Below, piece by piece: positions 914 through 52,301 of a DNA stretch of 64,000 bases. A program made the translations under genes and the position numbers. The stretch's first letter is position 1. Each line of letters begins with the position of its first letter. The stretch lies in sequence record NC_070998.1; one strand, given 5' to 3'. The notes under the pieces were generated by a model that worked only from the letters and a program-made list of their open reading frames with translations, searched no databases and had not been told where the DNA came from.

Positions 914-3112
914 TTATTGAGCGGTCAGACTTGTCTCGTTATAGGCTTCCAGTACGGAGTTCATCATATAAACACCTTTGGAGAACCACAGACGAGTAGT
1001 CGTGTACATGACAGATTTACCGTTAGGTTCATCTTCCCGGAAACCTGGTTCAACTTCCCAGTTAACGATGACAGAACCAAACTTCTCACGGATATCTTTC
1101 TCAGCTGTATCTTTAACAAAGGCAATATAACCTTGTTGACGATACTGAGTGTCACCAGAGATCTTGATCCAAGTGTCCTGAAGTACCTTCTCCACACAGA
1201 CACATTTCCAAACGTTGGAAAGGTCTTTCAGTACAGAGTCGGTGTTATCATAAACAGTCGGCAGAGCCGGTCGGCAATACTGAGAAGTATTCAAAGGAGT
1301 TACCGAGATAGCACCTTTGGTGAGGTTGTTAGCAGCCGGATCATCATCTTCAAACTGAACCAGTGGATCGTGAGCAACGCGCAGGGTGCGGTTACCTTCG
1401 TGATCAGGCATTCGATCACCGTAGATCTTGCCATCGTTACCACCACCTGCATAAGCAAATGCGTACATGGTATCGATGTTCAGAGAGAAGCGACCAAAAG
1501 TCGGTTCATCGATGATGCGACAATCCCACATGTTAATCGCTGCGCGACAAGCATGAGATTGGAAAGTCTCAGATTCCGGATACATGACAATCTTAGAGTT
1601 CAACGATTCCATAGTGGAATAGAGTTGCTCTTGAGATTTCTTCTTCAGATATTCAGTTGCACACAGTACAACAATGATATCTTTACGAACACCCAGGAAA
1701 TCGATCAGTGCATCTTTAACCGCTTCATTATAACCAACGTCCCACATAAAGGAAGTACGGTTACGAATGACGTCTTTGACATCCAAAGAACGACGGTAAG
1801 AAACAAAGTAAGCTTCCAGCAGAGATTGGTTCATGTACCAATATTGCTTATGACTTACAATAGCCGGAGAGCTGGTATTGGGAACCCAAACACCATCAAC
1901 TTCAGTAGTCCAGTCGGCGGGAGCGTCCGGGTACTTACCAGTTTTATCAGCATAGGGGTTAATACCACCGTTAGCTTGCAAGTAACTGTTCAGACCGACA
2001 CGAGTACCTTTGAGCTTGGAAGGAACATCTACCAGACCACCGAAGACGATGTGGTGATAATTCTTACCATAATGGTTAACCAAACTCAGCGGGTTCATGA
2101 TCGCTCCTTGGGGAAGGACATCGGTCTTGATCACCGGGGGAGTTTGTTTACCATCACCATATTCAGCTGCATACAGTTTAGTACAAACATCGTTCAGATA
2201 GTTGGTATAAACATGAGCAGATTCAAACGGTGCCGCTTTATCTTCCACTGGACGGTTTACTTGACGACCGGTGAAACGATCCAGACCACCTTGTACAGAA
2301 TAACGAACGTTATTAGCGCCAACGCTATTGAACAGGGTAATAACGGAATCGGGAGAACCGATAGTAGTAGTTGCTGGTACACGGATTCCACTAGAAAGTA
2401 GCTCACCGATGTTCATGGTGAACGGATATGCACCGTAGTTGATTACAAAACGCGCGATCTCATTCCAGTCGGTACCAAAAGAGTGACCAATGGCTGCATA
2501 CATTGCGTTGTAGCTATCGCCAATGCCTGAGAGTAACTCAAACAGCGGATAGAACGTCCCCGCGGTATCAGCAGGAACTGCTTTACCAGCAGGAGCGATA
2601 ACTTCGAAACTCTTAACCTCTCCTACAGCGGTAGCTTGATCGACAAACATGGTTGCCGGAGAAACAAAGATACCAGGAACAGTAGGAGTGTCTTCATCTA
2701 CCTTTGGATTACCTGCAATGTCAAGCACATAGTCATCACGGGAATCACGTTCGTAGTTAGGAACAGGAACACCTTCGAAGAGAACAACCCCGAGAATAGT
2801 ACGCGCTACTTCGACGTTATTAGTGAGACGCTTAAAGCTGAAAGAAGCTTGCGCTGCAGACCCAAGCTTTTGAATAGCGACCGCGATCGGGTTATAAAAC
2901 GGACCATACGGATCCATTACATCACCGAACTTCTCTTTGAAGTCAGCGACCGCGACTGTATCGCGTTTAGTCGGGCCCCGAGGGGTGACCATAGCGAAGT
3001 CAGGAAAGTGAGCAGGAGAGGCGAAAACGGGGATTGGATTAGTAAGATTTTCTTTGCTAACAATACCTTCGTTTACCACTTTTCCCGGAATCACTTTATT
3101 AAAAGTAGTCAT
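914..3112 (-). CDS. Contractile tail sheath protein (phiKZ gp29-like)
   Basis: 732 aa, highly expressed codon bias, sheath-tube pair divergent from the gp28/27/26-terminase block as in phiKZ. Confidence 0.82.
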   Translation of the reverse strand: MTTFNKVIPGKVVNEGIVSKENLTNPIPVFASPAHFPDFAMVTPRGPTKRDTVAVADFKEKFGDVMDPYGPFYNPIAVAIQKLGSAAQASFSFKRLTNNVEVARTILGVVLFEGVPVPNYERDSRDDYVLDIAGNPKVDEDTPTVPGIFVSPATMFVDQATAVGEVKSFEVIAPAGKAVPADTAGTFYPLFELLSGIGDSYNAMYAAIGHSFGTDWNEIARFVINYGAYPFTMNIGELLSSGIRVPATTTIGSPDSVITLFNSVGANNVRYSVQGGLDRFTGRQVNRPVEDKAAPFESAHVYTNYLNDVCTKLYAAEYGDGKQTPPVIKTDVLPQGAIMNPLSLVNHYGKNYHHIVFGGLVDVPSKLKGTRVGLNSYLQANGGINPYADKTGKYPDAPADWTTEVDGVWVPNTSSPAIVSHKQYWYMNQSLLEAYFVSYRRSLDVKDVIRNRTSFMWDVGYNEAVKDALIDFLGVRKDIIVVLCATEYLKKKSQEQLYSTMESLNSKIVMYPESETFQSHACRAAINMWDCRIIDEPTFGRFSLNIDTMYAFAYAGGGNDGKIYGDRMPDHEGNRTLRVAHDPLVQFEDDDPAANNLTKGAISVTPLNTSQYCRPALPTVYDNTDSVLKDLSNVWKCVCVEKVLQDTWIKISGDTQYRQQGYIAFVKDTAEKDIREKFGSVIVNWEVEPGFREDEPNGKSVMYTTTRLWFSKGVYMMNSVLEAYNETSLTAQ

Positions 3113-3226
3113 ACTCGACTCCGAAATTATGTTGGATTTTTTTGATCAAAAAAATCAATCGTATGACCTTACGGCCACTAGATGGTTTAACGTTAATACG
3201 CATAACATTATTTTGGGACTAGACCT

Positions 3227-4102
3227 ATGATTATAAATGGTTACGACACCACAGTCGGTAGTCGTTTTAAAGTAAAAGACAAAGCAACTGAAACCATTCG
3301 AATGCTCCAAAGTAGCGATAAATTGGAGTTGGTGGATCAACGTGGGGTTTACGCAATCTCTCACAAGAATGATTACAATCTTCCTCCTTTTATCTTCCCT
3401 ATTTCCACGCAAAACTACATGCGTGAAAAAGTAACTATTTTTGATCAACGTCCGTACATTAATAAGGAAGGTAGAAACGTTAATCTTCCCGAATATAATG
3501 TCATGTTGTTAGCTGCCTGTTTGCAACAAGATCTGCAAAACAATCAAACCACTTTGATCAAATCAGTTCGTCCATTTACTATCAAAGCATTCGCTAATGC
3601 AATGGGTCGTAAACTGGAACGCATGGTAATGCTGGACGTGAATCAATCTATGGTGGTTCGCGTCATCCTAGCTTATTATTATGTTTGTCTTCTGGAAAAT
3701 AGTCGAGATGACTTTGCATTCGTAGCCCAGAACAGCATTCATGGTGCGCTGCGTTTTCCTATTCCTTTTATCCAAGAGACAATCAAAGATTTGGGTTTTG
3801 TTAACACTCTTCCAGAACTACTGAAGGCACTGACCACTCATCCTGCTTTGCAATCTCTTTCTCGTTTGGATCTTCCAGGTCTGGTACAAGCTGGCACCAC
3901 CATCTTCTTTTCTACCTCTGGGTTTAAACAACTCATGGGTGCTGCACTAGAGATGCCTGCATTGTTCACTGCTCTGTGCTGGGGTGCTGCTACTCAACGT
4001 ATTTACCAAAACACTATGATTGGTGAAGAGTTGAACGTAAAGCAAGACAAACGTGTAGAGACCTTCATCAGTACTGTTGGATATTATTTTAAATCAGCCT
4101 AA
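3227..4102 (+). CDS. Conserved virion protein (phiKZ gp28-like)
   Basis: 291 aa, GGGA SD, syntenic position. Confidence 0.6.
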   Translation: MIINGYDTTVGSRFKVKDKATETIRMLQSSDKLELVDQRGVYAISHKNDYNLPPFIFPISTQNYMREKVTIFDQRPYINKEGRNVNLPEYNVMLLAACLQQDLQNNQTTLIKSVRPFTIKAFANAMGRKLERMVMLDVNQSMVVRVILAYYYVCLLENSRDDFAFVAQNSIHGALRFPIPFIQETIKDLGFVNTLPELLKALTTHPALQSLSRLDLPGLVQAGTTIFFSTSGFKQLMGAALEMPALFTALCWGAATQRIYQNTMIGEELNVKQDKRVETFISTVGYYFKSA

Positions 4103-21587: not shown

Positions 21588-21968
21588 AAAGTAAAAAATT
21601 GATGATTCAAGAGGGGTGTTATCCATGAGAGAAAATACTTTCTATTAAGCTTTGAGTTTCAACAAGATGTGATAGAGCATGAAGCAACAGAAGAGTTTAT
21701 TCAAACATGGATAACAATGTGGTCCGGCGACTGGAACTCGAATCCAGAAGACTTACGTCGCCACATTTTAAGTATGGTCCCTTTACCGATTTGGGCACCG
21801 CCGGAATATATAGATCGGATCTTTCTCTTTGTTGTCATGAACACCAATAGGTCTCATATTGTTTATTTACCTTAGTCACTTCAATTCGAGTCAAAGTGTA
21901 ATTTTTCGGATAAATGTTAGATTGACAAGTTTCTTGAGAAAGATCTAAATTGAGGAAACTTTGATTAC

Positions 21969-22229
21969 CTACAATTCGATATCAAAAGATATAGGATTTT
22001 CTTTGGTGAGCTTTGCAAGGAGTTCGGTGTATCCACCAATCAACTCCCCATCAAGAAAAATCTGGGGGACGGTAGAAATCTCCTTTCCGCACAACTTACT
22101 TAATCCGTCTTTACCGATACCGGTTGTAACGATATCGATGTATTCAAAATCAATTTCTTTTTGTTCTAAGAGATCCTTAGCCTTTACACAATAAGGGCAA
22201 TTTTCTCTGCCATAAACTTGTGCTTTCAT
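21969..22229 (-). CDS. grx: Glutaredoxin
   Basis: 86 aa, CPYC, TVPQIF and GGY motifs. Confidence 0.93.
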   Translation of the reverse strand: MKAQVYGRENCPYCVKAKDLLEQKEIDFEYIDIVTTGIGKDGLSKLCGKEISTVPQIFLDGELIGGYTELLAKLTKENPISFDIEL

Positions 22230-22323
22230 TTACTACCTTAAATATGGTAATAACCAGCTAGATTAAATAAGTGAGATAATGGGTAAAATTTTCTATTATA
22301 CTTATTTAACCAAGAGATTTAAA

Positions 22324-22400
22324 TGGTGGGCCTGGTGCGATTTGAACGCACTACCTAAGCCTTATGAGGACTCAGCTCTGACCAAGTGAGCTACAGGCCC
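22324..22400 (-). tRNA. tRNA-CAT, probably Ile2 (lysidine) rather than Met
   Basis: Full cloverleaf, loop CTCATAA, encoded CCA; C4-G69 and C5-G68 match TilS/Ile determinants. Confidence 0.85.
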
Positions 22401-22420
22401 TTGATTTACAAAACTTTTAT

Positions 22421-22924
22421 CTATAGCTTGAGCGTGTATCCCATATTCCGACAAACTTTTCTGTACTCTTCAAGATTAAATACTCCATTACAATCCGTGT
22501 ATTTAATCAAAGTGTTCATAGGTAATCCGGTGATTTCACAAGCTATTCTACATGTGGGATAACGTTTACCGTTAACATTCCATCCGGTCTTTTTGCGTAG
22601 CTTTTTTAGAGCGGCGCGATGTTTTTCTTCTGAGTCCCACCAGTTATCTTTACTTGTCCCTTTCATAAGGTGTTCTGGATTACAACGCCTTCTATTATGA
22701 CATGTATGTCTAACCACTTCTTCTTTTGTTATTTCACCATTGAAGACTTTATATACAAACCTATGAACAGACTCATTCTTACCAAGAAACCCATTTGGAT
22801 GAAATTGACCATAACCACCGCTAAGAGATCTGGTCCATTCCCAACATTTGTTTTCTTGATTAATAAAAATATGTGGTTTGATTTTATCTTCAAAAATAGT
22901 AAACAGTTCTTGATTAATCGTCAT
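22421..22924 (-). mobile_element. HNH endonuclease within the tRNA cluster
   Basis: CWEW, GYG, VHR and HTCHNRRRCNPEHL motifs; ATG at 22924 after TGGTG SD (track start at 22942 is TTG). Confidence 0.85.
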
Positions 22925-22944
22925 TTTATCACCATTAATCAAAT

Positions 22945-22977
22945 AGGTCGGAGCTCTAACCGCTGAGCTAAAGACCC
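22945..22977 (-). pseudogene. 5' half of a tRNA (positions 1-33), truncated at the anticodon
   Basis: GGGTCTT TA GCTC AGCGGTTA GAGC T CCGAC CT then runs into the HNH leader; no matching 3' half seen. Confidence 0.8.
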
Positions 22978-22984
22978 TGTAAAA

Positions 22985-23061
22985 TGGTGAGCTCGGTGCG
23001 ACTTGAACGCACGACAGGAAGCTTAGAAGGCTTCTATTCTATCCAACTGAATTACGAGCTC
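22985..23061 (-). tRNA. tRNA-Arg(TCT)
   Basis: Cloverleaf, stem GAAGC/GCTTC, loop CTTCTAA, encoded CCA. Confidence 0.93.
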
Positions 23062-44808: not shown

Positions 44809-46710
44809 ATGCAAGTTAACAACAACGAAAACAACGCTATGAACACTACCCTGGGTCTGGGTACTTCTTCTAACGGTTCTGGTTCTCCTCTGGCTGCGCT
44901 GTTTGGTAGCACCAACCTGATCACCTCCTCCCACTCCGCAACCGAAGTTGCTGATGTGATCAAGTACCTGCAAGAGAAAGTTAAAGAGCTGCTGGCCAAC
45001 ACCGCCCCTGAAATCCAGAAAGCAACTCTGCCGCGTTTCATAGAACGGCCGACCTCTGACATCACCCCGCATCTGCCCGCCATCGCAATGTACACCGTAC
45101 TGGGTACTAGCTGCTACGTTATGCCGATCCTGTTCTACAAAGCGGGTTTCACCGATGCCACCGATACCATCCAAATGGGTAACGAAGCTCCGCGTGGTTA
45201 TGCTAAAACTCCGACTTCCTTCATGACCAATGATGTAATGAAGAAGGTTAAGGAAAGCTTCAAATTGATCGACGGTAAAACCATGACCAACGTAGTGATT
45301 ACCGCACCGATGGTAATGAACCTGGAGCGTTATATCAAAGCTGGTATTACCGGCGAAGATATGGCCGCTAAAGTTGGTCACAAACTGCTCAAAGAGTGGC
45401 AGACCGGTATTACCAACATGGCTGCTCTGGAAACTCAGAAAGCTGGTGGTCAACTGCCCAACCCGTTTGCCGGTGGTAAACTGTTTGGTCAGCATGAAGC
45501 TGCTCTGGCTCGTGTTGAGTCTGTTCATCAACTGGTTGTTGATGGTCTGCCTGTTCCGTATAACCTGGCTGTTAAGCTGGCAACTGCCAACAAGAACAAC
45601 ATGACCAACTACGGTAACAACACCGCCAAGACCATCCTGACAACTTACCTGAACGTCCAACTGGAAACCATGTCTCCTGGTCAGTTCAACGATGTTCGTG
45701 CTCGTAACCCCGGTCGTCCTTGCGGTCCGATCGTTCCGGTTGTTGTAGCTGGCATGTCCAACCCTGGTGAAACCCTGCATCACAACAACTCCCTGATGAC
45801 CCAACTGCTCGGTCTGTTCGCAAGTCTGGCAGCTAACGCACCGGTGTTCTTCTCCGAAGCGTTCCGTGGTCAACAGGTTGGTAACCGTGGTAACCTGGGC
45901 GTGTTCAACAACTACATGGCTTCTATTCTGGGTCCTGTGTACGGTGCTGATCACAACCTCACCAACAAGAACATCACCAACATCGCAGTAACCAATGACT
46001 GGATCCAGCGTTATGTTGCTCCCCAAGCAGTATACGCAATCGATCTGATCGGTTATGTAGATGAAACCAGTAACAACGACTTCTGGTTCGGTATCACTTC
46101 TGGTGACAAGTCCTCTACCTACGTTCGTTCCATGATCTCCCTGTGTGATCTGCTGACCGGCGGTAAGTTCTCTGCTCTGGCTAAAGAGAACACTGAGAAA
46201 GGTGCAAACCGTGACAAGTCCAAAGAGTGGGCGTTTGGTGATGCTATCATGCATCGTACCAACATCATCCGTCCTTACGGTATCGCCAAGAAAGGTAATG
46301 CTTGGTTTGATCTGGGTGAAGTCGATGGTATGTTCCTGCGTCAGCCCGAGTACTACGGTACCAATGAAGTAGCAATTAATGAGTACAACGCCCTGCTGCA
46401 AGGTAGCATGGGTAACATTGATACTCGTATCCGTCAGTACAACATCCTGAACCGTCTGCAGGCGATGTTCAACAACGATGTGATCGTTGAAGGTTGGAGC
46501 CTGCGTTATGTATTTAACCAATCCTTCTTCAACACCCTGGCTCAAGCAATGTCTGCTGCTGGTACTCTGTCCGTATCCGGTAACAACGCTGCCGCTAACT
46601 GGACCATGCACGTTCAGAACGAAATCCTGAACATGACCATGGGTGCTAGCCTGTCTAACGCTCCGGTCACTCAGAACGTAATGAACAACGTGATGTACAC
46701 CCAGTTCTAA
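44809..46710 (+). CDS. chmA: Chimallin, phage nucleus shell protein
   Basis: 633 aa, strongest codon bias in the window, early promoter, directly upstream of nvRNAP beta-prime as in Chimalliviridae. Confidence 0.85.
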   Translation: MQVNNNENNAMNTTLGLGTSSNGSGSPLAALFGSTNLITSSHSATEVADVIKYLQEKVKELLANTAPEIQKATLPRFIERPTSDITPHLPAIAMYTVLGTSCYVMPILFYKAGFTDATDTIQMGNEAPRGYAKTPTSFMTNDVMKKVKESFKLIDGKTMTNVVITAPMVMNLERYIKAGITGEDMAAKVGHKLLKEWQTGITNMAALETQKAGGQLPNPFAGGKLFGQHEAALARVESVHQLVVDGLPVPYNLAVKLATANKNNMTNYGNNTAKTILTTYLNVQLETMSPGQFNDVRARNPGRPCGPIVPVVVAGMSNPGETLHHNNSLMTQLLGLFASLAANAPVFFSEAFRGQQVGNRGNLGVFNNYMASILGPVYGADHNLTNKNITNIAVTNDWIQRYVAPQAVYAIDLIGYVDETSNNDFWFGITSGDKSSTYVRSMISLCDLLTGGKFSALAKENTEKGANRDKSKEWAFGDAIMHRTNIIRPYGIAKKGNAWFDLGEVDGMFLRQPEYYGTNEVAINEYNALLQGSMGNIDTRIRQYNILNRLQAMFNNDVIVEGWSLRYVFNQSFFNTLAQAMSAAGTLSVSGNNAAANWTMHVQNEILNMTMGASLSNAPVTQNVMNNVMYTQF

Positions 46711-46796
46711 TAGAGCTGATAAACGTTAAGATGTAACTACTAGAGAGGAGGGTAATTCCTCCTCTCTAGTTTATTACCTGGAGGTAATTTTTTCGT

Positions 46797-48191
46797 ATGT
46801 CAACTTTAGCGAATGTACTTGAGCAGTATCAAATACAACATCTTCTTCCAACCACTCTATTTGATAAAATTATTGAAGAGTCAGGTTATACACCAGAAGG
46901 TGATGACGAAAGCTTTTACCAGCCTCTTTATCCAGACATTGAAGATTTTAATTATCGGCATGATACTACTACAGTTCATCCGATCTATCTGAATGATTTC
47001 GATTTTAATATAGAAGAAGATCGAGAAAAGATTACTGCTCTACTACGTACCGAATATGAAGGAAACAATTTCGATACAGTCGCGAGCTGCACTTGTAAGA
47101 AACATCGGACTAATGCGTACCTTGGTACAAGTTTCGTTTGTGACAGTTGTGGAGATCCTGTCACTAAACCACTTGGCGAGAAAATCGAAACCAAAGTCTG
47201 GCTTCGCACTCCTGCTAATGTGTCAGGTTTTATTAATCCTACTATTGCGGAAGTGTTCTTTCGTAAACTTAACACCAAAACTCCTAAGGTAAATTTGATG
47301 GAGTATTGGATTAACAAAGAGTTTAGAAATGAAAAGCGTTTTAGAGACCCAAGTCATAGTGCGTTTAAAATAGCTTGTAAACTAGAAGCTTTCCGTTTGT
47401 CGCTCAATATCGAATTTGGATATAACGAGTTCGTTGACAATATGGATTTGATTATCAGATCAGCTATTGAACACGACACTAATGGTGTTCTGGATCTTAC
47501 TGAAAAGAACCGTGAACATTATGCGATGTTCTGGGAAAAATTCAAATCAAGAGCTGTAGCTCAACATCTCCCTTTGCCTAACAAGGTAACCTCTATTGTC
47601 GAGTCTGACCAACGAGATAAATATGTTAATAAGGAGAAGAGTGATCTTGAAAAGATCTTTTACACCATTGCTGATATGTATCCAGCTTATGACTATCGTT
47701 CTACTGAGAACGCAGAGATCATGGGGAAGATCTTTACTAAACTCAAAAACATGATGTTGGATGTAACTGAATCTATCCTCTTCAAGAAGAAAGGGATGAT
47801 TCGATATCACGCTGGTGCTGGTAAGCTACCAATGACTGGTCGTTCTATTATCACAGGTGAATCTGGTGTTTGTCGCTCAGACACTATCATCGTTCCCTGG
47901 TTGTACGGAATAACTTGTTTGGATAAACACCTAACTAACTGGCTGTATCGGAAAGGTTATACCCCGCTGAAAGTAAAGGAGATTATACGTTCTGCTGCTA
48001 ACTTTAAACATCCTGTTGTAGAGGAGTTCTTTAACTGGGTAGAAAGTAATCGATACGCCATTGCAACGTGCGGTCGAAATCCTTCTATTCAGTATTTGTC
48101 AGCACGTGGTTTCTTTGTACAGTTTAACCGCGATGTAGAAGATAAATCCATCCGGATTCCGATCACTACAGTTAAGGAATTTAATGCCGAT
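46797..48191 (+). CDS. nvRNAP beta-prime N-terminal subunit (phiKZ gp55-like), exon 1
   Basis: CTC/CDSC zinc finger, RNPS motif; ends FNAD at GAT, a U-ending 5' splice site. Confidence 0.9.
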
Positions 48192-48665
48192 CGAAATGTA
48201 TTTAGCATACATGTGGGAAAATAACTTAAACTATTTTCTCCAGTTAAATACACTCAGTCCCCCTAGGGTGAAAGTCCTAGTGAGGTACCTTTTGAATTGC
48301 TGGAAAGTCCACAAAAGTTACTTACCTAAGCTTAATTAGAAATGATTAAGTTAGTGGTGTCGAAAGACAGAAACAACAAGTAACCTGTCCTACGCTAAGA
48401 AATAATGCTAAGGGATACTAACAAGGGATAATCAGCCTCCGAGGATCTAAGTATATTCGTGATGAATAGATAGGATTCAGGTTCAACGACTGTCCCGTGG
48501 CTGGGAGTAGGGAAATCAGATTTCCTGAAGTATTAGGCACCTAACCGTGTAAAGACGTAGGTGATGGTATAGTCTGCTCCTCTAGTAATGTAGAGGCGGG
48601 TGTCTTAGCGCACCGGTGTTATTATGATAGCCAAAATGGCGAACGGTAATAACACGGACATAAGG
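48192..48665 (+). mobile_element. Group I intron 1 (474 nt, no ORF)
   Basis: P AATTGCTGGAAA, Q ATAATCAGC, R GTTCAACGACTG, S GTATAGTC; P3 GGTACCT/AGGCACC; terminal G at 48665. Confidence 0.88.
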
Positions 48666-48674
48666 TTCGACGGT
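48666..48674 (+). CDS. nvRNAP beta-prime exon 2 (9-nt micro-exon, Phe-Asp-Gly)
   Basis: TTCGACGGT is preceded by G and ends in T; joining exons restores NADFDGD. Confidence 0.85.
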
Positions 48675-49826
48675 AAACTTTTGCTGTCATTAAACCCTTT
48701 CAATTGCTGGAAACCCCTTAGAGCTTAATCAACTAAAGCGGAATTGGAAACAATAAACGTAAATGTTTGAAAATGATTAAGATTGGGCAATCAGCAGCGA
48801 AGCTTCTAAATACATTTGAGATGAATGGATACGAAGAACGTTCAACGACTACGTTCCCAGAAGCCTGGGATGATGAGGGCGCTTTAAAGCGAAGATATAG
48901 TCTCTACCGGTATGAAAGTATCGGATGGAAATCCCTGACCGGAATTCCACGTGATCTAGCGAATCACGAAGAGTCCTAAAAAGACGGAGAACAATAATGT
49001 TGTTAATACCTGAATCCGATGGGTTCTTTGTTACTGAAACTGGTCGAGTATACGACAAAGACGGCAAAGAACGAAATTACTACACCAACGGAGACGGGTA
49101 TATTACCGCCTCGATCTCTATTGGTGGTAAGTGGCAAACATTTGGGGTACAGCGGTTGGTCATGTTAGCCTATGAACCGATTGATAATCCAGATGACTAC
49201 ACGGTCAATCATATTGACCTTGATAAAACCAATAACAACAAACCAAATTTAGAATGGCTGACAACAAAGTGGAACAATATCCATTCTGCTATTTTTAACA
49301 GTAAAGGTAAACGCCCTGTTGTCAGATGTTTGAATGGTGATGAAGAAATGTTCATCAAAGATGTGATGACGCTTCCCACAATTCTTGGTGTCGATATCCA
49401 GCAAATATGGTTTGCAATTAAGAACTCAACCCAGATAAATGGATGGTCCATTTCACCGATCCCTTATGACGATAAAGAAATTATCCGATTATTGAACAGT
49501 TCCATTGGAACTGTTGATGGACCAGTGAGACCAGTTAGATGTTTAGACATCGAAACTGGAATTTGGAAAAATTACAAGAGTATGAAAGAAATGGCTAATG
49601 AATTTGGTGTTGGTATAACACACATCAGACATCGCTTAGCTACCTTTGAACGTCCTCGTATATTTCTCCAACGTTACATTATTCTGGATGATGGAGTTTC
49701 AGATGAGTTCATCACCCCAGAACTAATCGCCATGTTAAAGATGACTTGGACGAAGAAAAGAAAGCGTTGGTCAGAACGCTGTAATTAGGACTCGATAAAA
49801 ACCACTTATGTGGAACAATGTGATAG
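48675..49826 (+). mobile_element. Group I intron 2 (1152 nt) carrying an HNH gene
   Basis: P1 GACGGT/GCTGTC with U-G; P AATTGCTGGAAA, Q AATCAGCAG, R GTTCAACGACTA, S AAGATATAGTC; terminal G at 49826. Confidence 0.9.
48997..49788 (+). CDS. Intron-encoded HNH homing endonuclease
   Basis: GDGY, VQRLV and VNHIDLDKTNNNKPNLEW motifs; GGAG SD; lies 3' of the catalytic core. Confidence 0.88.
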   Translation: MLLIPESDGFFVTETGRVYDKDGKERNYYTNGDGYITASISIGGKWQTFGVQRLVMLAYEPIDNPDDYTVNHIDLDKTNNNKPNLEWLTTKWNNIHSAIFNSKGKRPVVRCLNGDEEMFIKDVMTLPTILGVDIQQIWFAIKNSTQINGWSISPIPYDDKEIIRLLNSSIGTVDGPVRPVRCLDIETGIWKNYKSMKEMANEFGVGITHIRHRLATFERPRIFLQRYIILDDGVSDEFITPELIAMLKMTWTKKRKRWSERCN

Positions 49827-50012
49827 GATAACATGTATCTATTCTTTATCCCCGATATGGTGGGTAAAGTAAATGCGTATAGTAACTGGGGGCACCATCA
49901 AATGGTCGATCCAAACAAGCCGTTTAAAACAAGTAGATTTGTTGCAGCGACACGAACTAATCTCTTAAACATAAATAGCGTACTTCTTAATACACCGATT
50001 GAGGAGGACTAA
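49827..50012 (+). CDS. nvRNAP beta-prime exon 3
   Basis: DNMYLFFIPD...EED*, 61 aa; spliced protein is 529 aa. Confidence 0.85.
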   Translation, partial: DNMYLFFIPDMVGKVNAYSNWGHHQMVDPNKPFKTSRFVAATRTNLLNINSVLLNTPIEED

Positions 50013-50013
50013 T

Positions 50014-50664
50014 TTGAACGTAACATCAGCTTTCAATAGAGGTTGTGGTGGAAGCTTGAGTAGTGAAGCTGCCCAAGTCTACGATAGCTTCATGGGAAAT
50101 ATGTTGCAGAAATACGAAAACTTAACTGGATGGTTGAGCGAAACTGTAGATTCTGTAAAGAAAGCTCATAGCAACTTCATGTCTTCTAAAATGTGGGAGT
50201 TCTCTAACCGTATTGGTAGAACAGGACACTACGTAGGAAGATTCGAAATCGGTTATCTGTCAGAAGTTCATTTCCAACAACAAGCCACTGGGTTTATGCG
50301 TAATTACATTATGGCTAATCCTAACATGATGGCGTTGTATGAAACTGAACAAGTTTCTGGATATGGTGGAGATTTCTCTGACTTGTGTTCTGGTATTGGT
50401 CATGGTAACTATTACTATGATAAAGCGATGGACGGATTAGTTACTCAAAATGAGAGTGATCAATACTTCTATCGTACTTACCACAATTCAATGGACGAAG
50501 GTACACATCTGAGTCCTAGAGAACGTTTCGATATTCAACGTACCTGGCGTGCAACCGACCACCATATTAAGAACTTGTTTGACTCGTCTAACATTGCGGG
50601 TGGAAACATTCTTACTTTGGAAGAAGTTGAAGAACGTCGTAAAGCAGAAGAAGACAAAGAGTAA
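50014..50664 (+). CDS. Conserved Chimalliviridae core protein (probably phiKZ gp59-like)
   Basis: TTG at 50014 after GAGGAG; FMRNYIMANP, GY and YDKAMDG motifs; synteny. Confidence 0.6.
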   Translation: MNVTSAFNRGCGGSLSSEAAQVYDSFMGNMLQKYENLTGWLSETVDSVKKAHSNFMSSKMWEFSNRIGRTGHYVGRFEIGYLSEVHFQQQATGFMRNYIMANPNMMALYETEQVSGYGGDFSDLCSGIGHGNYYYDKAMDGLVTQNESDQYFYRTYHNSMDEGTHLSPRERFDIQRTWRATDHHIKNLFDSSNIAGGNILTLEEVEERRKAEEDKE

Positions 50665-50737
50665 TTAAACTGAACTACCTGAGGAGTTATCCTTGGGTAG
50701 TTCTTTTAACTGCTTTAAAAATTAAGGAAATAGACAA

Positions 50738-50860
50738 ATGAAGCAAGTTCACGAAGATGATATTTGTGTTGTAACACGATCTGAAGTTGATGTTAATCGT
50801 TACTATGGAAGTGGACGTCGTAGTAAACTACCTCTGCCGATGCTTAGCGTAAAGGTTTAA
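50738..50860 (+). pseudogene. Truncated 5' copy (40 aa) of the Tad1-like gene at 51975
   Basis: MKQVHEDDICVVTRSEVDVNRYYG versus MKEVHKDNICVVTRSEVDVNRYYG; same AAGGAAATAGACAA leader. Confidence 0.88.
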
Positions 50861-50897
50861 AATCAGTTATTTAGTTAACAATATTAGAGAGTTAAAT

Positions 50898-51941
50898 ATG
50901 ATAAATGTTTATTTCTCAGAATTACCTAAAACTTTAACTGAAATATTGGGGTTAAAGTACGATGAAACAATGTCTTATGAAGAACGAGTTCAGAAAAGAT
51001 ATGATTATATTAAACAGCAGTATGAACTAGATAACAAATATGAGGGATGGGATTACCTTGAACATATCAAAGGTAGAGCATTATTTAATCATTTCATTAC
51101 CTTTGATTATTTAATTTCTACCAAAGGTAGAATTTTAACTTTATTTGTACGAAAAAATAAATATAAAGTTTTAACTGGTGATGTGGGAACTGAAGGTTAC
51201 AAAAGACAGGCTTTACACTTAAATAACGTGGTTTATAAATTCACTAATCATCGTGCCGTCGGATCCACTTTCGTTCCTAAACAGAACCACTACAAAGAAA
51301 GTTTAAATATTTTAGAAGTAAACCATAAAGACTCGATTAAGTTAAATAACAATTTCTTTAATTTGGAATGGTGTACCGGGAAAGAAAATGTACAACATAA
51401 TCACATCGAGCGATCAGATAAAAACATTTATTTTAATCAAAACTTCGAAGCGACGGTAGAAATAGATTGTAAATACAAAGGTGTTAAGTTCAAAGTTTTT
51501 GGTGCGGAAGGTCTTAATGAAATTGGGCTGGTTGCCAATCGGGTCCGTAAAGTTCTAATTGGTTCAACGACAGTTTCCTTCGGTTGTAGTTGGAAAATAA
51601 TAACTCAAGAAGAAGCTGAACAACTTCCTGATATTCCAGAGTTTATTAAGAATAAATTTCTTAATGATAGAAACTATATGAATCATCGTATTAAACCTTT
51701 AAAAGGTACTGTTGTTAAAGATTGTAAATATCAGGGACTGGAATTTGTCATTTACGGTAAACAGGAATTGCGAGGTTTTGGATTTAGCCAAGGCGGGATC
51801 TCAAAAATAACGTCAACCGGGATTTCACACCAAGGATGTCTTTTTGAATATATTTCCAGAGATGAAGCTGAGTTATTACCCAGAGGGTTAACTAAAGAAC
51901 AGCAAAAAGTTATTGTAATTAAACGTGACGCTACTGAATGA
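50898..51941 (+). mobile_element. Free-standing HNH endonuclease, close paralog of 14209..15255
   Basis: First ~50 nt identical to 14209; VNHKDSIKLNNNFFNLEW; two C-terminal repeats. Confidence 0.88.
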
Positions 51942-51974
51942 ATATGTTTCATATTCTATAAAGGAAATAGACAA

Positions 51975-52301
51975 ATGAAAGAAGTACATAAAGACAATAT
52001 TTGTGTTGTAACACGTTCAGAAGTTGATGTCAATCGTTATTATGGTCGTGGTCGCAATAATAATCTTCCATTTTGCATGCTTAGGTATCAGGACTCAAGT
52101 GATCCCAATAAAGAAAATGGTTTCACTTTGGAAGGTGTAATCGCTTCTGCTATTGATCGTTTGGAACACTTTAATACTGGACAGTTTAAATGTGATCACA
52201 ATGATCGTGCTTTGGAACATCTTCGTGGTGCATTGAAAGAACTCAATGACCGAGTAGAAGATCGTAAAGCGCGAGATGTTTACAACACCGACAAAGCTTA
52301 G
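51975..52301 (+). CDS. tad1: Tad1-like nucleotide-signal sponge (anti-Thoeris/anti-CBASS)
   Basis: DRL..F..G.F.C..N..AL.H...AL..LN.RVEDR..R.V..T.K matches the recalled Tad1 C-terminal core. Confidence 0.75.
   Translation: MKEVHKDNICVVTRSEVDVNRYYGRGRNNNLPFCMLRYQDSSDPNKENGFTLEGVIASAIDRLEHFNTGQFKCDHNDRALEHLRGALKELNDRVEDRKARDVYNTDKA

Follow-up and report, generated by a model that had tools for sequence, protein, structure and literature searches.

The gene for the N-terminal beta-prime subunit of the non-virion RNA polymerase (nvRNAP) of Aeromonas phage PS1, a nucleus-forming, phiKZ-like phage of the genus Ferozepurvirus, is very probably interrupted by two independent, mobile and self-splicing group I introns, inserted only 9 base pairs (bp) apart in the DNA coding for the motif NADFDGD. 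The three aspartates (Asp) of this motif bind the catalytic Mg in all multisubunit RNA polymerases (RNAPs). In PS1 their codons are spread over three predicted exons, the middle one being a micro-exon of nine nucleotides (nt), TTCGACGGT. The analysed stretch, referred to below as the window, has a length of 64,000 nt and corresponds to bases 1-64000 of the PS1 genome (MN032614 / NC_070998) with 100% identity and unchanged coordinates.

Judged from its sequence and position, the gene starting at 46797 is the ortholog of phiKZ gp55, encoding the N-terminal beta-prime subunit of nvRNAP. The phiKZ non-virion polymerase is known to transcribe middle and late genes, and the relevance to middle and late transcription that a preliminary description of this DNA had ascribed to the interrupted RNAP gene agrees with this identity. 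The assignment follows from a match to a solved structure and from the position after chimallin: the product of exon 1 (465 residues) aligned with PDB 7ogp_A (PHIKZ055/PHIKZ056.1) with an E-value of 9e-31 over query residues 30-465, the alignment stopping exactly at N-A-D, and the gene for chimallin, which forms the nuclear shell, is located immediately upstream, the phiKZ equivalent being gp54 followed by gp55. Pfam gave no match for either exon 1 or exon 3, exon 3 alone retrieved chance matches only among PDB sequences, and BLASTP returned no alignment between PS1 exon 3 and phiKZ gp56.1. The last 61 residues of the uninterrupted protein of Erwinia phage AH04, on the other hand, share 64% identity with exon 3 (E 9e-33), and it is only via this closer protein that the C-terminal piece finds support.

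All parts of the gene lie on the plus strand. Exon 1 (46797-48191) comprises 465 codons and ends ...KEFNAD, and at the junction 48191/48192 the bases ...GAA TTT AAT GCC GAT are followed by CGAAAT.... Group I intron 1 (48192-48665; 474 nt) contains no open reading frame (ORF) and is inserted between the codons for the first Asp and Phe (NAD/FDGD); it ends with ...ACATAAGG at 48665/48666. The micro-exon (48666-48674) supplies Phe-Asp-Gly, including the second catalytic Asp, and is followed at 48674/48675 by AAACTTTTGCTGTC..., the beginning of group I intron 2 (48675-49826; 1152 nt), which is inserted between the Gly and the third Asp codons (FDG/D) and harbours an HNH endonuclease gene (48997-49788; 263 amino acids, aa). 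After ...AATGTGATAG at 49826/49827, exon 3 (49827-50012) starts with GAT AAC ATG TAT... and provides the third catalytic Asp, 60 further codons and a stop codon (DNMYLFFIPDM...IEED*). The catalytic Asp codons are GAT at 48189-48191, GAC at 48669-48671 and GAT at 49827-49829, and both the exon ends and the distribution of the three codons over three exons are as first described from the DNA alone.

Scripted joining of the exons gave 1590 nt, i.e. 529 codons and a stop, reading SIRIPITTVKEFNADFDGDNMYLFFIPDMVGKV, with the motif in the context ...KEFNADFDGDNMY... and the joined flanks SIRIPITTVKEFNADFDGDNMYLFF. The joined product restores an intact NADFDGD, which is contiguous only after conceptual removal of both introns, and agrees with uninterrupted homologs. 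The peptide EFNADFDGDNMYLFFIPDMVGK would be expected in the fully spliced beta-prime N-terminal subunit, with EFNADDNMYLFFIPDMVGK as its counterpart after skipping of the micro-exon. An intact motif encoded elsewhere, the circumstance named in the preliminary description as speaking against a split motif, was looked for and not found: no further DFDGD occurs in any frame of the 64-kb window, and tblastn located a single gp55-like gene in the PS1 genome.

On comparison of natural alleles, the splice junctions of PS1 are fixed by single-intron and intron-less relatives and not by the reading frame alone. In AVP1, whose sole intron here is intron 1 and carries an HNH/NUMOD1 ORF in the loop of helix P1, TTCGATGGTGATAACATG (TTCGATGGTGATAAC) is contiguous; in pAEv1810, which has only an intron at the position of intron 2 (site 2, the position of intron 1 being site 1), it is GCTGACTTTGACGGT that is contiguous. 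ACP1 carries both introns in ORF-less form around the same micro-exon as in PS1, and PS2 is 99.7% identical to PS1 across 97% of a query spanning 46000-51000. Among more distant phages, ZPAH34 and CF8 possess intron 1 only, D3 intron 2 only, and the Erwinia phage AH04 has the motif without intron, as do 19 of the 24 IMG/VR loci that reach it. A metagenome scan matched one contig, OEQO01000735 (locus L016), in which introns 1 and 2 surround a PS1-type micro-exon and both endonuclease genes are present; exact-pattern scans of IMG/VR for the 3' end of intron 1 with its exon and for the 5' end of intron 2 gave no match. Altogether, nothing intervenes between the micro-exon and exon 3 in AVP1 and ZPAH34, or between exon 1 and the micro-exon in pAEv1810 and D3.

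Moreover, the intron boundaries cannot slide, since at neither intron do the preceding exon and the intron end in the same base, or the intron and the following exon begin with the same base. Occupied splice sites are preceded by a codon with the final U that P1 demands (GAT at site 1, GGT at site 2). In single-intron relatives lacking intron 1 the site-1 codon ends in C, those lacking a site-2 intron have GGT (AVP1) or GGA (ZPAH34) at site 2, and the uninterrupted IMG/VR alleles inspected at the DNA level have GAC and GGC at sites 1 and 2. Intron-less alleles were encountered solely in more distant genera, with 63-69% protein identity to PS1 exon 1.

A search of the window with Rfam model RF00028 (gathering score 50 bits) identified two adjacent group I cores and no others, and the tandem arrangement proposed initially is thereby supported. 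The core of intron 2 (48610-48924) scored 79.6 bits (E 1.4e-18), above the gathering score, and that of intron 1 (48240-48595) 42.4 bits, with an E-value of 5.9e-9 in the local search and of 1.9e-7 when the whole window is searched. The model also recognises every orthologous intron in 14 related loci, the ORF-less site-2 intron of D3 with 88.4 bits. The intron 1 orthologs of CF8 (62.1 bits) and ZPAH34 (59.6 bits) exceed the threshold, and those of PS1, ACP1, AVP1 and L016 score between 42 and 50 bits and stay under it; the weak score is mostly due to the P1-P2 part of the alignment to the model. In both PS1 introns the 5' splice site follows a U and the terminal base is a G (G48665 and G49826).

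The P1 helix of intron 2 is formed by GACGGU (48669-48674) and GCUGUC (48683-48688); its 6 bp include the splice-site U.G pair, and two further intron-intron pairs extend the hairpin, which is closed by a tetraloop. The hairpin is part of the minimum-free-energy structure predicted for 48596-48700 (z = -3.8 over all 105 nt folded), and a guide complementary to GACGGU (GCUGUC, GCCGUC, GCCGUG or GCCGCC) is kept in every one of the 11 site-2 introns collected, so that the use of six of the nine micro-exon bases in this helix, as originally read from the letters, holds. In the predicted local fold none of the nine bases is left single-stranded, UUC binding to the 3' end of intron 1 and GACGGU taking part in the P1 of intron 2. 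The core of intron 2 ends at about 48924. The HNH ORF lies beyond it, enclosed by the stem GAGUCC (48971-48976) / GGACUC (49788-49793); it is peripheral to the core and dispensable for it, the D3 ortholog at site 2 being devoid of an ORF.

P1 of intron 1 is of a different make. Only GAU of the exon pairs with a conserved guide GUC (48257-48259); next come an internal loop and the extension helix formed by UGUAUUUA (48197-48204) and UAAAUACA (48245-48252). This P1, too, is contained in its minimum-free-energy fold. The extension covaries: the sequence differs and the pairing is kept among PS1/ACP1, AVP1/metagenome/ZPAH34, CF8 and PDCC-1. The alignment of seven intron 1 sequences contained 113 predicted pairs, 22 of them with compensatory changes, and P7 and other core helices are kept. 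RNAalifold suggested, in addition, that the guide GUCC binds a GGAC close to the 3' end of intron 1, a pairing discarded as an artefact of omitting the 5' strand of P1.

The PS1 tandem would be one instance of a family-wide insertion hotspot. Five insertion sites were located within 21 nt of NADFDGD coding sequence (AAU|GCU|GAU|UUC GAC GGU|GAU|), and every one of them follows a U in third codon position. Site 0, after N (or G), is occupied in phiKZ (locus L005) and AerS_266; site 0.5, after A, in EL (L019), vB_PQ1 (L022) and VB_ZK_P1; site 1, after the first D, in the PS1 group, ZPAH34, CF8, PDCC-1 and locus L024; site 2, after G, in the PS1 group, D3, AerS_266, VB_ZK_P1, FishSpeaker, locus L026, VP4B and Aphrodite1; and site 3, after the third D, in Pseudomonas phage PA7 (L041). 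Two of these phages also have tandems. In Aeromonas phage AerS_266 (L020, ~2692-3390) two Rfam-supported group I introns flank a 15-nt micro-exon, GCAGACTTTGACGGT, and in Raoultella phage VB_ZK_P1 (L018, ~830-1465) tandem intervening sequences flank a 12-nt micro-exon, GATTTTGACGGT; the second of the latter sequences gave no RF00028 match at E <= 0.01. Homologs of gp55 were detected in 289 phage records. A query of 130 aa across the motif matched 107 phage records, in 50 of which a single place accounted for 80% or more of its length, a count that includes some short-intron records in which two pieces were joined.

A separate observation concerns Pseudomonas phage vB_PQ1, where positions 1379-1600 contain two near-identical copies, about 130 nt apart, of the 3' intron end and exon start (...GQV, then DFDGDSMYAIFLIDLESK). 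Either the 3' splice site has undergone tandem duplication or the repeat is an artefact of assembly.

The endonuclease genes of the two introns are found at different stages of decay. Both are intact in L016; in PS1 the ORF of intron 1 is lost and that of intron 2 truncated, and ACP1 has lost both. The product of the PS1 intron 2 ORF, named HNH endonuclease in GenBank, matched Pfam HNH_3 with E 5.8e-5 and 23.1 bits (cut-off 24.8). Compared with the L016 copy, the gene has suffered a frame-shifting deletion of 175 nt between ATGTTAAA direct repeats in the region 49730-49790, which leaves 263 aa versus 320 aa; about 58 C-terminal residues are gone, along with the last DNA-binding-like repeat. 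Judging by its sequence, the truncated protein may be inactive.

Between PS1 and L016, identity reaches 96.8% in intron 2 and 92.4% in the core of intron 1, versus 82.5% in exon 1, 83.0% in exon 3 and 82.6% in the downstream gene. Exon 3 is almost identical over its first ~100 nt and then drops to ~82%, the genome-wide level; exon 1 is diverged up to the splice site. This step suggests one-sided co-conversion during homing of intron 2. Within Ferozepurvirus the introns are distributed patchily despite ~95% identical flanking DNA. The site-2 intron of ACP1 and pAEv1810 belongs to a lineage different from that of PS1 and D3, which means that the tandem pair arose more than once, or that one partner was replaced. 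By these comparisons intron 2 shows the signature of recent horizontal transfer, and decay and patchiness correspond to the known life cycle of homing introns.

We propose that in the pre-mRNA, ordered as exon 1, intron 1, 9-nt micro-exon, intron 2 and exon 3, each ribozyme would splice independently of the other, with either going first, through the usual two-step pathway that guanosine initiates, and that both excisions would be needed for a functional polymerase subunit. The introns, bearing endonucleases at the time, would have homed to the most conserved stretch of an essential gene, and the endonuclease genes would have decayed thereafter. Several points weigh against this scenario. Splicing in PS1 is deduced from DNA comparison; homing into an allele in which the other flank is merely a 9-bp exon is left unexplained; and PS1 intron 1 is under the Rfam gathering threshold (42.4 vs 50 bits). 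Its exon-guide pairing, of 3 bp only and invariant, cannot be confirmed by covariation. P10, searched for by eye, was unconvincing in both introns, with 1-2 pairs each (guide-upstream ACACUCA versus UUCGAC in intron 1; ACUUUU versus GAUAAC in intron 2), and for this reason supports no claim on splicing order or 3' splice-site choice. Furthermore, long-read sequencing of phiKZ yielded, under the conditions used, no spliced reads from the predicted introns (PMC10914365), making splicing in phiKZ-like phages less well documented than assumed. The solved phiKZ polymerase chain is nevertheless named as a gp55/gp56.1 fusion (PDB 7ogp_A).

The preliminary description had seen the tandem as a regulatory device, in which the order of splicing is fixed and skipping of the micro-exon yields an in-frame but dead subunit (NAD-DNMY), which could act as a checkpoint for middle and late transcription or, by extension, as a timer. 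Part of this is sound: skipping of 9 nt keeps the frame by simple arithmetic, loss of FDG would kill catalysis, as the Asp residues bind the catalytic Mg, exon skipping has a precedent in Twort, as cited in PMC3073962, and with all nine micro-exon bases paired in the predicted fold, steric interference between the ribozymes is conceivable. A constrained order nevertheless finds no support, since each P1 is self-contained (GAU/GUC with its internal helix; GACGGU/GCUGUC), no P10 is convincing, and the intron 2 guide GCUGUC is unable to pair with the end of exon 1; the sequence imposes no order. Nor is the checkpoint supported. The introns occur singly (AVP1, pAEv1810, ZPAH34, D3) or are absent in many relatives, some single-intron ones being ~95% identical in the flanking DNA, and hence the phage lineage does not need the pair. 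The endonuclease genes are decaying, to differing degrees, and intron 2, with its recent horizontal transfer, is more conserved than the exons, all typical of selfish elements. Given the single occurrence, endonuclease decay and intron 2 conservation, the layout bears the marks of selfish mobile elements and not of a regulatory device, and we regard the latter as very unlikely. A broader version, in which the nvRNAP motif is a battleground of nucleus-forming phages, tandem occupancy is selected because it confers immunity to two endonuclease families and permits attack on co-infecting relatives at two adjacent sites, extending the interference known from PhiPA3 gp210, and interdependent splicing around the paired 9-nt exon sets the yield of active and dead subunit and thereby times the middle/late switch, is speculative and, on balance, improbable.

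It is also quite unlikely that one of the ribozymes, most probably intron 1, no longer self-splices and requires a phage or host protein or the neighbouring ribozyme, with inefficient expression or incipient pseudogenisation as a consequence. The sub-threshold scores of intron 1 in PS1, ACP1, AVP1 and L016, the loss of its ORF, its 3-bp exon-guide pairing and the lack of P10 would fit such a state; yet PS1, PS2 and ACP1 are viable isolates with a single gp55-like gene, P7 and other core helices are kept with 22 compensatory pairs, the CF8 and ZPAH34 orthologs pass the threshold, and the low score originates largely in the P1-P2 part of the model. A pseudogene was rejected on account of the viable phages with one gene and the conserved intron 1 core. 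As for a nested twintron or a single composite intron, in which TTCGACGGT would be intron sequence, the Rfam alignment of intron 2 does begin at 48610, inside intron 1, but this overlap consists of P1/P2 model positions placed on the P9 hairpin of intron 1. Without the 9 nt a universally conserved motif would lack its Phe-Asp-Gly, single-intron and intron-less alleles have these nucleotides as ordinary exon sequence, and the bases expected of true borders are in place, a terminal G before the micro-exon and the U of the U.G pair at its end. Nine exon nucleotides separate the introns and each occurs alone at its own site in relatives; the nested arrangement is almost certainly wrong.

Two independent introns in PS1 can be compared with several known systems. 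The prediction of single introns in phiKZ gp55 and other polymerase genes goes back to the genome paper (cited in PMC10914365 and PMC11512511), and the earlier statement that group I introns are established in RNAP genes of phiKZ-like phages is supported by the reports on phiKZ gp55/gp56 and PhiPA3 gp210 (PMC11512511, PMC10914365, PMC11620839). In phiKZ gp55/gp56/gp56.1, as in PS1, the orthologous gene stands beside chimallin and has a group I intron (75.6 bits) with an HNH ORF in the same catalytic motif; however, phiKZ has one intron, at N|ADFDGD, with all three Asp codons in one exon, whereas PS1 has two, at D|F and G|D. PhiPA3 gp210 likewise has a group I intron with an HNH endonuclease beside conserved catalytic Asp residues of a jumbo-phage RNAP gene (PMC11620839), but the gene encodes the beta subunit of the virion polymerase, contains a single intron and was studied experimentally, PS1 being known from sequence alone. 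The work on gp210 (Birkholz et al. 2024) demonstrated that endonucleases of this kind can play a part when co-infecting phages compete (PMC11620839).

The staphylococcal phage Twort, invoked earlier for closely spaced introns, resembles PS1 in having several group I introns in one gene: according to the accounts of Landthaler and Shub cited in PMC3073962 and PMC12908238, orf142 has three group I introns with exon skipping, and nrdE two. With the Twort nrdE intron, the core of PS1 intron 2 shares 81% identity across a stretch of ~120 nt. The Twort introns resemble one another, while the two PS1 introns are of different lineages. In placozoan cox1, a 1-nt exon lies between mitochondrial group I introns (PMC5436844), and there too the second intron beside the first leaves a tiny exon supplying part of a functionally essential codon. 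That state is mitochondrial and fixed across the phylum; the PS1 state is phage-borne and polymorphic among near-identical genomes, with single-intron intermediates for both sites. No report of a phage micro-exon or of tandem introns in a phage RNAP gene was found in the literature searched.

The close relatives, with intron 1, a site-2 intron or both and with endonucleases intact, truncated or lost, form together with the distant intron-less alleles a natural series. It should be useful for analysing how a second intron invades 9 bp from the first, whether neighbouring ribozymes interfere, and what minimum length allows an exon to serve as the 3' exon of one ribozyme and the P1 substrate of the next. 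Five sites within 21 nt suggest intense endonuclease targeting of the motif, which bears on intron endonucleases of jumbo phages as weapons in co-infection. The understanding of the group I intron mechanism is left unchanged by the PS1 finding.

The introns also have consequences for annotation. In the GenBank record of PS1, gp214 (46797-48224), a hypothetical protein, extends 33 nt into intron 1; gp213 (48821-48979) lies inside the ribozyme core of intron 2 and is probably spurious; and gp211 (49833-50012), again a hypothetical protein, is exon 3 minus its first two codons. The polymerase subunit of PS1, PS2, ACP1, AVP1 and others is filed as two or three hypothetical proteins, and because of this split core-gene and phylogeny pipelines see a truncated protein without the catalytic loop.

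Elsewhere in the window, a free-standing HNH gene (50898-51941; Pfam HNH_3, E 6.8e-5) is situated within 50738-52301. On one side it has the complete next gene (51975-52301), on the other a diverged copy of 40 codons from the 5' end of that gene (50738-50860, 72% identical). ACP1, AVP1 and pAEv1810 do not have this insertion, which looks like intron-less homing with partial duplication of the target. Additionally, a cluster of three transfer RNA (tRNA) genes was identified on the minus strand at 21723-23061 (Rfam tRNA, 46.7-62.9 bits).

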